From Cyanophora paradoxa CCMP329 (taxonomy: Eukaryota; Plantae; Glaucophyta), in contig QPMI01000305.1 of the NCBI GenBank assembly GCA_004431415.1, forward strand, positions 1-51,569: a stretch of 51,569 nucleotides of DNA. Reading direction: 5' to 3'. The position numbers were made by a program, and so were the translations under genes. The notes under the pieces were generated by a model that was given only the letters and a program-made list of their open reading frames with translations, was not told the origin of the DNA and made no database searches. Of the stretch, positions 41,603 to 47,220 are shown piece after piece. Each line of letters starts with the position of its first letter. Positions within the stretch are counted from its first letter, which is position 1.

Positions 41603-41646
<44 letters not shown>

Positions 41647-42271
41647 CCCCGCCCCGCCTCCAGCTCTGCTCACGCGGGGCGGGCAGGCGCGGCGGGCGCT
41701 GGCGCAGCTGGAGCCGCTGGCCCCCGCCGGCCCCGCCCCCGTCTACAACGCCGCCGCCCTCCTCCAGTCCGCCCCCGCGCCCTGCGCATGCCGGGCCGCA
41801 AAGAGCGTGCGCGGTCGGCCGCCGACGCGAGGCGCGGGTCGCAGGGGGCAGGAGGCGGTGGGGCGGATGGGGCGGCACTGGGGGGAGCTGGACGGGGAGC
41901 TGGGGCGGCGGGTGCGGGCCTTCCTCCGCCACGGCCCTCAACGGCGCCGTCTTCCGAAGTTCGATATACCCGAGCTCCGCCGCAGCGGCGCCTCTTCCTA
42001 CCGGTCACGGAGTCCGCCAGCGACCTTGCCCCTGCCCTGGCACCCCGGGCCCGACGCGGCACGGCGCAAATCCGGACCCTCACTGCGGCGAACTCGCGCG
42101 GTTGTCAAAAGATCCGAAATCGAAATTAAACAATCCGCGCAAGCTCAAGATATTTATATACACGCATGGCACAGTATCGATCGCATGGCTAGTGCGGTGC
42201 CCTCAAAATCACATGTACAGCTGCAAGTCATCCGCGATCAACTCGCGATCGTCCGGATCCGTCCCTCGTGA
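41561..42271 (+). CDS. Possible short or fragmentary gene, hypothetical
   Basis: Exon-like pieces (ARRALAQLEPLAPAGPAPVYNAAALLQ; EAVGRMGRHWGELDGELGRRVRAFLRHG) separated by C-rich/G-rich intron-like DNA with a 38-nt poly-C. The first junction does not phase cleanly, so this may be a pseudogene. Confidence 0.3.
41608..41645. repeat. Poly-C homopolymer (38 nt)
   Basis: Uninterrupted C run; a 21-nt G run also occurs at 4077-4097. Confidence 0.95.
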
Positions 42272-42276
42272 TCGGA

Positions 42277-45200
42277 TCATGAGCCCTTCGATTCGCCGTC
42301 ATCCGTCCCCCGGTCCGCCGCCGGCCCTCGCGATCGCTGCCTCTTCACATTCCGCCGGCGGTTCTTCGCCCGCTTCCGCTCCCTTTGCTTCTCCCTCCTC
42401 CGCTCTTCGCGCTTCCTCTCTCGCTCTTCGCGTTGCCTCTCCCACACCTGCGATCAGAGAAATAGAATAGGAGAGCGATCAGAGAATGAGGAACGAGAAG
42501 AGGGAGTGGGCGGAGGCCAGATAAATTTGCAGGCCTTGAATTCGAGCTCGTCGATGACAACGGTCGACGACCGTGAGCGCCCCTTGAAAAGGCCCTTGAC
42601 ACTCTCGCCCAGACAGCCGGTAATTGTGACGGAGACCTCGGTGCTAAGACCATCCCGCAAAATCTGATCACGATCATGAGGCCGGGGACGGGTCAGTGCT
42701 AGCACTCTAGATCTTCAACTTTTTGTAGCTGATATTTTTTATTAATGCCTAGGCAAGGGCCGCCGCGGCGCCGGCGACAAGAACGTGATACCAACCACAA
42801 TGTTTGAAAGGTGATCGTGTATATCGCGAGCTCTCGCCGCTCAAGCGAGCTCGCACCTCGTACGGGGGCACCGGCTGGGGGGCGAGCTCGCGAGAAGAGG
42901 ATCCGGAGTCGTGCGAGACGTCGACCGAGATTGTGAGGCACTCGAGGGCCGGCAGCGCCACGATCGCCTCCGCCTCGGCCTCGGAGAGCGGGCGGCTCGT
43001 GTACAGCTGAAGGCCGAAGGTTATGAGCGACCGACGCGCGACATCGCTGCAAAGAAACTCGACGATGCTCTCCGGGTCCGTGGCGAGGCCTGCGATCGCG
43101 AGTACATATAAATATAAATACGGTCTGCATGCGGGCTGCTCTAGAGCGTACAAAGGCCGTACAGCTGCAGGGCTCACTTTTGGACGCCACATTTAATGAC
43201 AGCGACTTCAGGTGCCGCATGCTGGAGATGGCCCCCGCAAAATCGCGCAGGGCCGTCGGTTCGATGCGAAGCGCCAAGCGTGTGTAGGCGCGTTGCACGG
43301 CCGTGCTCTTGAGAAGCGCCACGACCTCGTCCGAACATGTGGCCGGAAGCCCTGGGATCGGATGAATTCGCGCTTAATCTCGATAAGAGGGCGGTTTAGC
43401 TATATATTATACCGAGGAGATCCATCCTCAGGAACTCCAATTCGGGTAGACTGGAGAGTGCCTCCGCGAGGGCACGCAGCTGCTGAAGAGGCAGCTGCGG
43501 GTTGCTGTCGACCTCCAACCCGATATGGATTTCCCGCAGGCGCCTGACGCATTGAAGGGCCAGGATCGCTTCAGGAGCCATTGTATCAAAATTCTGTACC
43601 AGGACTTCAACGTTAACATCAAACGTCAGCGAAATGATCGTGATCAGGAAAAAACTGGGCACCGGCAGACGCAGTTCCCTGATGGATTCGAGATTTGGCA
43701 TGCGTTCCAGAATGGAAAAGATATCACTGTCACTGCACCCGTGGCCACGATTTACCGTATCAGTACTAATATTAATGGTGCAAATTAAATGCCATCTAAC
43801 TTTAGCATGAAACAGTCAAGGAACGCCATATACCAATATATAGTTAAAATTGACAGATACAGAGGGGAACGCCATAATCGCCGACACATATCAATGGCCA
43901 GGGCCAGGCCAGGGGCACATGATATATACAAAGTTGATCACGATCGCGAGCGCGAGAGCATGTAAACGAACGTTAACGCGTTATATAATCATTTATATTA
44001 TCAATCATGACCAATCTATCATCGGATATTATAATCATTATAATTATATATGAGCTAAAACGCACCAGATTATCCATGTGTGCAAATAAAAGTAGATGCT
44101 TCGGAGGGTCTTCCCGGCGGCGCCGTGTGCAAGCTTCTGGAGGCCATCGTTGACGACAACTCGGCTTCCGTCGTCGTCCATAAGGTGGGTGAGGGCGTCG
44201 GGATACTCGAGCACTGCGTGCTCGAGGAACGCCAGTGGCGCCAGGGCCGCCAGTATGTCCGACCCGCCATACATCAGCTCGCCCCAATCGTGGCCGGCTC
44301 GCCTTTCCGATGTCTTTGCCTGGAGGCGGATGTCGCGGAGGTTGGGGCAGGCGGCGACGACGACCGCTGCGGCTCTGACTTGCTCGACGAAGATGCCGAG
44401 CGATCGGAGCGCGCCGAAGGGGGCGAGGAACATTTTCAGCTCGGAGGCCGACGCCGACGGCCAGCATTCCCACTCTCCTTCATAGCTGCTGCGGTCGAGG
44501 CAGATGCTGAGGCTCTCCAGGAGGCTGGTCGCCCCCTCCTTGGGTTCCAGCGCGCACAGCACCTCGAGCACCAGGTCGCGTAGGAAATGCTTGTCCGTGT
44601 CATCGTCGACGTCGAGCCATCCCATCGATCCTGTGAGCACCTCGATATCGACCTTTTGTGGCTGCGTAATGGCTTCGAGGAGGCTGCACACGTCCTCGAC
44701 CGTGTGCTCAGACGCGCTATACAGCTTGATCGAGACGCTGGCGCCGCTGCCGAGCTGTAGCTTTCCCTCCTCGATGAGCGAAACGAGGGAATCACATACG
44801 TCCGCGCCGTCGAGCTCCAGCTCGAGGCTCGCCGGCGCCCATTCCTTCTCCTCTATCAGCCGCCGGAACCGCCTGCGATCGCATTTCGAATTTCGAAATC
44901 GATCGCGAGTGCTAGAAGAGCGCTAGCGAAATTTAATGCGCAGCAATTTGAGTCTGGCGCCCCGGCCATGGTCATTGATTTGTCTATGCACGCAATTTTT
45001 ATATGTATATAAATATCGATATGACTGCGCATGCGAACCTGCACACGCTGCGCAGGGGCCAGCTCGCACATAGCCCGAGCACTTTGAAAATGGCGACGAC
45101 GACGGCATCTGGCAGTGTGTCGAATTCGCCCATGGCCAGGTATTGCGGATCCAGAGCCGTCGATGGGTCAGCGATCGCGACATCGATATCAATATCGGTG

Positions 45201-45795
45201 GACTCGTAGAAAGCAATTAGCTTGAAGGGATCCTCCTGCGCGCGGTTGGAGGTCTCAGAAATTAAATTGGACGCGTAAAGCGCACGTGCACGGCATCGGA
45301 TATCGTTGTTTTATTTATATGGGCGCTCCGGATCTTTGGCACCTGTTCCACGTCGCGGGAGGACATGATAATCCTACGAACAGAGCCGTCCGGATGGCGG
45401 CGGTCTACCACGACGTCGACGCCGCCCTCGCGGTTCAGGTCCTCCCGCACCGCTAAAATGTCCACAATAGCCGACCGTTTCAACAGATCCTGTACATGTG
45501 CGCAGACGTGCATTCAGAAATGCGTATTCCTGGCGCGGCATGCAATGCTCGTGGCGGCGCGCACCTGGTCTTCCTGGCTCAGAATGTCCGTCTGGCTCGC
45601 AGCGGAGACACGGCCGCCGCGGTCGCGATCGCTCGCTCTGACGACCACCGCGCGGGCGTCCGGCGCCGGCACAGGCGCGGCGATATCGATCGCAAGGGAC
45701 GCTCCCGCAGCTGCCGATGCGCCAAGAGCTGGCTCCTCATGATCAACGCAGGTCCGAGCTCGCTTCGCCGTGCGCTGGTCGTTCGAATGCAACAT
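42277..45795 (-). CDS. Chromo-shadow-like domain + F-box + LRR protein with basic C-terminal tail, 9-10 exons
   Basis: Frame-consistent exons 45795-45565, 45489-45343, 45235-45039, 44872-44066, 43765-43413, 43351-43178, 43089-42857, 42663-42535 and 42447-42277 (GT-AG, last one GC-AG). F-box MGEFDTLPDAVVVAIFKVLGLCASWPLRSVCR|RFRRLI; LRRs (ACPNLRDIRL, MPNLESIRELRL, LPELEFLRM, LPALECLTI). The F-box part could also start at ATG 45133. Confidence 0.68.
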
Positions 45796-45999
45796 CGCTC
45801 GCTGCTCCGTATCCACCGAGAAATTAACATTACACACGCGTTCGCGCCAAGTTAAAGAACGGGCGGCCAGCGCGCACCTCGCAACAAAATGACAGGATGA
45901 CAGGATACAGGATCCGGATGATCTACGCAATTCGAGGGATGATGCCTTTCTTTTTACGCGATATACGAGCTCGAGGGGATCCCGAGGAAAGGAGAAATT

Positions 46000-46076
46000 G
46001 GGGGGGGGGGGGGGGGGAGGGGGGGGAGGGGGGGGGCGAGGCGAGGCGAAAGTATACGTATACGTATACGTATACG
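46000..46076. repeat. G-tract plus (GTATAC)4 palindromic microsatellite
   Basis: Near-pure G tract at 46000-46036, then GTATACGTATACGTATACGTATAC at 46052-46075. Confidence 0.9.
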
Positions 46077-46190
46077 CAAACGTACTCATGGTACCAATTA
46101 ATACTCCAATTTAAGTATATGTTCATCGAAGCCGGCTAGCGCTCCTTAAATGTACTGCGCGCGCCCGGCTCTTTAAATTTACTGATCATG

Positions 46191-46280
46191 ATGCAGCCGA
46201 TGCCGGAGCGCATATCGATCGATCGCATGTGCATATGATCGAGCGAGCGTCTCTGCGACGATCTGCGGCACGAGCTCAGC
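46191..46280 (+). pseudogene. Degenerate upstream duplicate of exon 1 of the 46411 gene
   Basis: Matches 46411-46482 (ATGCAGCCGA..CCGGAGCGCAT..GATCGAGCG..TCTCTGCGACGA..GCGGCACGAGCTCAGC), with a 23-nt insertion, a 4-nt duplication and a deletion. Confidence 0.75.
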
Positions 46281-46410
46281 CGCGATTTTTCCGAGTTCCC
46301 ACCTCTCGAGCTCCGGATCCGATATCCCTCTAGCGCTAGCTCGAGCTCGAGCTCGCGAGTACTAGTCCCCTCTGAACTCCCCAATCGAACGCGCGCTGAC
46401 AACAATATTA

Positions 46411-47220
46411 ATGCAGCCGACTCCGGAGCGCATGATCGAGCGTCTCTGCGACGAGGTGCACACTTTGCGGCACGAGCTCAGCGATCGCACGCGCTCCGAG
46501 GCAAGTTTCGCGCTAAATTCCGGTTTTTCGCCGACTTTCGCGCACAACAAACGGGCCGGCGCCCCCTGCACGCAGGAGAAGCACCGGCGACACGAGGCAG
46601 AGCTCTCGGTGCGCTCGTAGCTCTTGTTCGGAATGTATGCGCTTTCAGTCCAAGTTTCAAAGCCTGAGCACATTTTCGCGCCTAAGAATTTTCGCGCGGT
46701 TAGACTGAGCACAAAACCTGAGCTTGAGCGCGATTTCGCGCTCCCGCAGGTGGAGGTCGCGGAGGCGCGCGCGGTCTCGAAGGCGCGCGCGAGCCGGCTG
46801 GAGCAGTGCGAGAGGCGGGTGGCCCAGCTCGCGGCCAGCTGCAGGTCACGATCGGCCTCTTCGACCGAGTCCGGCTCTGATCGCGAGGCGGACACCGATC
46901 GCGAGGTGCGCTCTGTTAATCGGCACCGCCGATCGCGAACACGTCTGGCGAGCCCACGAGCGCGGCGTGCCGCTTTTCCGCAGGCGGCACGCGTGATCGC
47001 GACATCGATGGGGCCGGAGGAGGTTGCGCGGCGGGCGGAGCGGCTGGGGCGGGAGGTGGGGGAGCTGCTGGGGCGGGTGGCGGCGGAGGGGGCGCGGGCG
47101 CGGGCCCTCGGGGACCAGGCGATCGACGCCCTCGTCCAGCTGCGCCTCCTCCAGCGCCTCCCGCCCTCGCCCCCGCCCCCCGCCCCCGCCCAGCCCGGCC
47201 CTCTGCTCCCCTGGTTCTAG
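46411..47220 (+). CDS. Hypothetical coiled-coil protein, 4 exons
   Basis: MQPTPERMIERLCDEVHTLRHELSDRTRSE|EKHRRHEAELS|VEVAEARAVSKARASRLEQCERRVAQL...DRE|AARVIATSMGPEEVARRAERLGREVGELL...LLPWF*. Introns 46501-46576 (GC-AG), 46609-46749 and 46906-46983 are all phase 0. Confidence 0.6.

Follow-up and report, generated by a model that had tools for sequence, protein, structure and literature searches.

What does a set of scattered open reading frames (ORFs) on an algal contig encode? The question is raised by the minus strand between positions 42277 and 45795 of contig QPMI01000305.1 (assembly GCA_004431415.1) of the glaucophyte Cyanophora paradoxa CCMP329; the whole stretch analysed here, 51,569 nucleotides (nt) long, is referred to as the window. 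A first-pass annotation made from the sequence had joined these ORFs into one spliced gene and proposed that its product fuses a chromo shadow domain to an F-box and leucine-rich repeats (LRRs), so that an SCF (Skp1-cullin-F-box) ubiquitin ligase could be docked on heterochromatin. We conclude with moderate confidence that the locus encodes an F-box/LRR receptor of an SCF ligase that is intact, restricted to this lineage and probably nuclear, and that has an inserted N-terminal module of predicted sheet and helix.

Gene structure and the paralog family

Can the fragments be read as a single gene? Nine minus-strand exons join into 2409 nt (802 codons and a stop) with no in-frame stop and with consistent phases (Table 1), as had been proposed, and the peptides that the first-pass annotation quoted for exons 2 and 3 agree with the translations. 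The introns of this model are 61–333 nt long and have a GC content below that of the exons, the donors are GT at seven introns (GTGC at four of them) and GC at one, and the acceptor is CAG in all eight cases. When a codon model is trained on the exons that have homology support, exons 1, 2 and 8 and the first part of exon 3 have positive coding scores in the proposed frame, and all introns and both flanks have negative scores.

Table 1 Features of the nine-exon model, with positions in the window; P0001 is the published protein model of the locus and NLS stands for nuclear localization signal.
Feature	Position	Strand	Content	Evidence or remark
Exon 1	45795-45565	minus	77 codons: start codon, M-x6-R-xx-KRAR (putative NLS), low-complexity Ala/Pro/Asp-rich stretch	GTGCGC donor, frame open
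Exon 2	45489-45343	minus	49 codons, phase 0-0 cassette; predicted three-strand beta-meander	least certain exon
Exon 3	45235-45039	minus	whole exon	
Exon 3, first part	45134-45235	minus	helix motif EDPFKLIAFYES, then acidic linker	upstream of ATG 45133
F-box	44851-45124	minus	split by intron 3 (44873-45038)	Pfam F-box-like (under cut-off), three-helix model, Skp2/FBXL structural matches
Exon 4	44872-44066	minus	269 codons; first LRR block	P0001 residues 33-300 100% identical; strand-helix solenoid in model
Exon 5	43732-43413	minus	LRRs	collinear blastp matches; skipped in published gene model
Exon 6	43351-43178	minus	LRR	only last 16 codons used by published model
Exon 7	43089-42857	minus	conserved LSEAEAEAIVALPALE LRR; ends PPYE	
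Exon 8	42663-42535	minus	family C-terminal motif ILRDGL...GLFKGR	candidate 3' end (donor)
Exon 9	42447-42277	minus	Arg/Lys/Glu-rich tail in the frame of the first-pass annotation	acceptor CTCTGATCGCAG after pyrimidine tract

How far do relatives bear this structure out? An exhaustive HMMER search with exon 4 among 1.84 billion representative sequences returned 50 proteins at E ≤ 0.001, a set that includes P0001, which is this locus, and otherwise consists of 49 paralogs; all 18 of the family members that were looked up derive from the Cyanophora paradoxa EukProt models. Exon 4 is 68% and 54% identical to the two closest paralogs and 30–48% identical to the rest. Local blastp of the exon translations against the 50 proteins aligned exons 3–8 each at collinear paralog positions, with E values of 1e-10 to 1e-13 for exons 3, 5 and 7. 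For individual pairs, the whole of exon 3 shares 31/66 identities with P0025 (E 4e-18), exon 5 reaches E values down to 2e-10 (for example P0023, residues 330–391), exon 6 matches residues 472–526 of P0037 (E 3e-6), exon 7 matches residues 490–552 of P0050 (E 1e-13) as well as many further paralogs, and exon 8, at E values of only 0.02–0.05, aligns to the C-termini of P0037, P0010 and P0014. The joint between exons 7 and 8, PPYE/ILRDGL (here and below a slash marks the splice site), matches the family C-terminus RPYEVLRDGLRPEV...LFAGR. Judged from these alignments, the support for exons 3–8 exceeds chance.

At the other end of the gene, the KRAR motif that had been noticed near the N-terminus is found at residue 11 of exon 1. 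A motif of the form K-R/K-A/S/T-R lies near the start of 25 of the 50 family models, mostly at residues 6–17, and the family consensus (alignment A1) opens with M-x6-R-xx-KRAR, a spacing identical to that of exon 1 (M-LHSNDQ-R-TA-KRAR). The six-frame translation of the window, 103,134 residues in all, contains just 6 copies of KRAR. Past this motif, pairwise BLASTP of exon 1 against the paralog N-termini gave no significant similarity. We take exon 1 to be the true first exon of the gene and regard the published start at 45133 as a truncation. On that reading the beginning of exon 3 would have to be coding, since it is the sole open path into the F-box.

The published model of the locus (tig00001299_g8077.t1, 405 aa), which was the best match in the exon 4 search, joins exon 4 to the last 16 codons of exon 6, thereby omitting exon 5 and most of exon 6, and then leaves exon 7 for an unrelated 12-residue end near 42000, omitting exon 8. 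On the evidence of the alignments, the by-eye model is better than this automatic one for exons 3–8, because exons 5–7 are collinear with the paralogs and the joint of exons 7 and 8 reproduces the family motif. Two further published models of the family, like P0001 with its skipped homologous exons, look truncated or mis-spliced: that of P0002 (tig00000514_g1793) begins directly after the F-box, and that of P0025 (tig00000057_g35) begins eight residues before a conserved helix. Gene finding may thus fail systematically for some members of the Cyanophora F-box/LRR family.

Collinearity from the F-box to the C-terminal motif, together with the KRAR signature, places the locus in this family on sequence grounds, and the family itself is apparently a Cyanophora-specific expansion that has produced at least 50 F-box/LRR receptors, whose N-terminal additions vary. 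A literature search found no papers on F-box families in Cyanophora. No second copy was found in the window with tblastn of all exons and all 50 family proteins, and a search of metagenome contigs with an F-box alignment (A2) as query gave no relatives. A search of viral contigs with P0001 likewise gave none, and therefore no viral link has been shown for the low-GC island in which the gene lies.

The F-box and LRR fold

Does the product have the architecture of an SCF receptor? The first-pass annotation had named it a candidate SCF adaptor, and a sub-threshold Pfam F-box-like match, an AlphaFold model and structural matches to F-box/LRR proteins agree with that assignment. The Pfam F-box models (PF12937 and PF00646) were applied to P0001, which holds the joint of exons 3 and 4 as one sequence. 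Among the paralogs, P0017 (24.9 bits) and P0037 (24.8 bits) pass the cut-off of the F-box-like model, and P0046 passes that of the F-box model (22.4 against 20.5). The AlphaFold model of P0001 residues 1–300, computed with the family alignment A1, has a predicted local distance difference test score (pLDDT) of 83.8 and a predicted template modelling score (pTM) of 0.85; its F-box consists of helices at residues 9–19, 21–29 and 32–40, which are followed by an alternating strand-helix solenoid encoded by exon 4. The best Foldseek matches of this model in the PDB are Skp2, MAX2/D3, FBXL3, FBXL17, COI1, FBXL2 and TIR1 (E 3e-6 to 1e-3), and the 26 best PDB matches are all F-box/LRR subunits of SCF ligases (E 3e-6 to 8e-4). 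The predicted structure is a three-helix F-box followed by an LRR solenoid.

The FBXL-type receptors Skp2, FBXL3, FBXL17, MAX2/D3, COI1 and TIR1 likewise set a three-helix F-box directly before a strand-helix LRR solenoid. However, sequence identity to them is 12–16% and the TM-scores are modest (0.33–0.52), the Cyanophora family has a KRAR signature and a C-terminal motif of its own, and this member has in addition a stretch of 107–156 residues before the F-box. The family layout comprises a putative N-terminal KRAR-type NLS, by which the protein would probably be nuclear, an F-box, a long LRR solenoid and a conserved C-terminal PYEVLRDGLRPEV...LFAGR motif. By analogy with Skp2, the FBXL proteins and TIR1, the F-box would dock on Skp1 of the SCF ligase and the LRR solenoid would pick the substrate.

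The module ahead of the F-box

What sets this locus apart from its relatives? Other Cyanophora F-box/LRR paralogs, such as tig00000514_g1793, tig00020693_g13042 and tig00000057_g35, have the same layout and the same motifs from KRAR to LFxGR, whereas this locus has a far longer spacer from KRAR to the F-box, exon 2 is present here only, the exon 3 helix is shared with tig00000057_g35 alone, and the GC content lies below the level typical of the window. The distance from KRAR to the LPDA motif is 17–40 residues in the paralogs and here 156 residues with exon 2 or 107 without it, and the locus carries an insertion ahead of the F-box whether or not exon 2 is used. A different addition before the F-box, charged and coiled-coil-like, occupies residues 1–70 of P0031, and because of it this position in the family seems to accept varied modules. 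At the present locus the insert would consist of a disordered part from exon 1, exon 2 as a probable cassette for which a sheet of three strands is predicted, and a helix that one paralog shares, and we take it to be an added small module for protein binding or dimerisation. In Fbw7 and beta-TrCP the same position is taken by the dimerisation (D) domains.

Exon 3 opens with the helix motif EDPFKLIAFYES, whose counterpart in P0025, the sole paralog in the set of 50 to carry such a motif, reads EDAMKVIAYYES; the linker behind it is not conserved. The eight residues that precede the motif in the P0025 model end in AQ, which is the read-through of the acceptor ...GCGCAG, and that model, too, probably lacks upstream exons. 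In word-indexed protein searches, residues 1–40 of P0025 returned only P0025 itself, and residues 9–90 returned only known paralogs, none with a chromo domain in Pfam.

Is exon 2 part of the message? Its use, which no homolog supports, fits its coding-like codon statistics and gene-typical splice sites. Its GC content at the three codon positions (0.71/0.37/0.73) is similar to that of exon 4 (0.67/0.41/0.80), its coding log-ratio per codon is +0.32 in the proposed frame and -0.23 and -0.04 in the other two, and its borders, CAG/G and CAG/GTGC, are those of the gene's other introns. Modelled alone by AlphaFold2 from the single sequence, it has a mean pLDDT of 71.6, with strands at residues 9–17, 23–31 and 37–43 and the start of a helix. 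Local blastp found no homolog of exon 2 among the 50 family proteins, no relative lies elsewhere in the window, and a word-indexed search with the 83-aa ORF around exon 2 gave no relative among the proteins of 46–145 aa in a set of 5.8 billion.

An alternative that we consider rather unlikely is that exon 2 goes unused, such that the mRNA either joins exon 1 to exon 3 or starts near ATG 45133; the module would then lack a folded domain and amount to a short conserved helix within an N-terminal linker that is disordered. The lack of a homolog in the paralogs or elsewhere would fit this alternative, as would the start of the published model at 45133 and the fact that skipping exon 2 keeps the frame, both joints being phase 0; RNA evidence points neither way. 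Against it stand the gene-typical borders of exon 2, the coding-type GC of its codon positions, the positive coding score specific to one frame and the fairly confident single-sequence fold that is predicted for it, and a start at 45133 would moreover lose both the KRAR exon of the family and the conserved exon 3 helix.

Could this module be the chromo shadow domain that the first-pass annotation had seen in exons 2 and 3? On that account exon 2 and the exon 3 helix would form a chromo-shadow-like domain (beta1-beta2-beta3-alpha1-alpha2), able to dimerise or to pair with HP1-type proteins and thus to bring the SCF ligase to heterochromatin, a proposal that we now regard as improbable. The order of predicted elements fits (three strands, the start of a short helix and the conserved helix), and IAFYE in the exon 3 helix equals the core of the helix of the HP1 shadow domain, a likeness that is a lead and not a test. 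The likeness to the HP1 shadow domain (PF01393) is thus one of element order and helix core, seen by eye and in the exon 2 model. In HP1 the shadow helix is followed by a Trp-containing tail that binds PxVxL partners, whereas here an acidic linker follows the helix; this protein also differs from HP1 in having no chromodomain and in a C-terminal extension that is not conserved.

Database comparisons gave no match to a chromo shadow domain. Exons 2 and 3 were searched as separate queries, and the sensitivity of Pfam was reduced because the domain was thereby split; with each of the two, Pfam gave no match to Chromo_shadow (PF01393) or Chromo at E ≤ 10, and PDB sequences gave no match at E ≤ 10. 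Across the individual exons Pfam returned nothing but noise on the basic tail, with no Chromo match in any exon; the N-terminal chromodomain with an aromatic cage that marks the HP1 family was thus not found, and the order of parts here is KRAR, insert, F-box and LRR. A language-model search of the ESM Atlas by features with exon 2 gave no usable match, and the exon 2 model found no chromo chain among its 50 best Foldseek or VIA matches, but only generic beta-meanders (PDB Foldseek, VIA wide and Atlas).

A link between an F-box/LRR protein and HP1 does have a precedent: the mammalian F-box/LRR protein KDM2A (FBXL11) binds HP1's chromo shadow domain by means of an LxVxL motif (PMC5388433) and is thereby physically tied to HP1-type chromatin. 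However, KDM2A is a ligand of the shadow domain and carries none itself, and it has JmjC, CXXC and PHD domains that are absent from the Cyanophora protein. No papers describing a fusion of a shadow domain with an F-box were found in the literature search. The chromo shadow reading is neither supported by any of the searches made here nor refuted, and heterochromatin targeting is pure inference. It is similarly doubtful that this locus and tig00000057_g35 form a Cyanophora subfamily in which one or more chromo-shadow-like beta-beta-beta-alpha-alpha modules before the F-box dimerise the SCF receptor or dock it on chromatin partners of the HP1 or PxVxL type. To our knowledge, an architecture of a shadow module with an F-box has not been described before.

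Expression, 3' end and genomic setting

What speaks against an intact receptor with an inserted module? Several results do. The Pfam F-box-like match, on residues 4–39 of P0001 (E 3.8e-4), scores 20.6 bits, short of the 24.3 that Pfam sets as its cut-off. Exons 1 and 2 are missing from the published model, whose start is ATG 45133. Exon 2 is without a detectable relative, and a 49-codon open frame at such composition is in itself not improbable. A two-chain complex prediction of exon 2 with the exon 3 helix scored 0.00, which is evidence neither way. In four probable RNA runs from three studies, no contig covers the locus and no joint was seen. Finally, the very basic tail described in the first-pass annotation stands only in part: the ORF at 42277–42447 exists, whereas intron 8 has several candidate donors and exon 9 could be read in more than one frame.

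With regard to expression, three sequencing runs of 2012 contain the DNA of the locus (0.71–0.97 of sampled words), and none of the runs on record as RNA contains it. Contigs of the RNA runs gave only matches of 18–50 nt, most with one or two differing letters, which probably derive from paralogs; a 30-mer that recurs at 45038–45067 is the conserved end of the F-box and probably comes from paralog transcripts. The first-pass annotation had accepted that absence of expression would count against it, and the contigs of the four runs provisionally agree with such an absence; the locus looks silent or weakly expressed in the samples examined, although contigs show presence and cannot prove absence. 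A family copy that was retired recently and is now silent, its open frame being only a remnant in the low-GC island, would fit this missing coverage, the GC of 52–60% within surroundings of ~80% and a GC content at third codon positions below expectation for this genome, but is very unlikely given 802 codons open over nine exons with intact splice sites, family motifs retained from exon 1 through exon 8 and contigs that speak to presence rather than absence.

Where does the protein end? The donor that had been chosen for intron 8 (AAG/GCCTGC) is one of 11 GT/GC candidates, exon 9 is open for 33–56 codons in all three frames, and an alternative donor at 42530 (CCT/GCAAAT) would make the tail acidic instead of basic. 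The segment gained by reading through exon 8 (42457–42534) has a coding score of -0.67, which is non-coding, and an intron is therefore likely there. Blastp found no counterpart of exon 9 among the paralogs, which end between a few and ~45 residues past LFxGR.

The gene lies in an island at roughly 42–47 kb with 52–61% GC, in a window of ~80% GC. The octamer GCGATCGC, known as the cyanobacterial HIP1 palindrome, has six copies in 42000–46600 (at 42330, 43092, 44875, 45171, 45625 and 46481), compared with 0.6 ± 0.8 and a maximum of 3 in 300 dinucleotide shuffles of the island, and its density is 1.30 per kb in the island, compared with 0.11 per kb elsewhere in the window. Two of these copies make up the 3' ends of introns 3 and 6 (GCGATCGCAG). 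A poly-C tract of ~45 nt (41606–41650) and a poly-G-rich tract of ~49 nt (46000–46048), both given for the plus strand, lie on either side of the gene, near both edges of the island, as inverted homopolymers separated by 4.35 kb. The region upstream of the start codon contains a (TATACG)n microsatellite at 46050–46080 and a pair of direct repeats of ~45–75 nt (46191–46266 and 46411–46459) that are 88–91% alike; the microsatellite and the repeats fall in a 1.2-kb gap to an apparent divergent plus-strand gene starting near 46995.

What does the locus mean for Cyanophora? If the ordinary reading holds, that of a receptor with a small added module, the value is chiefly one of annotation: the published model suffers from truncation and mis-splicing, as probably do the models of further low-GC members such as tig00000514_g1793. 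What can be regarded as firm is the correction of the gene model, the existence of a family, specific to this species, with at least 50 members, and the insertion before the F-box. Should the module nevertheless prove to be a shadow-type dimeriser, the locus would represent a new coupling of an SCF ligase to HP1-like chromatin in a deep-branching alga.

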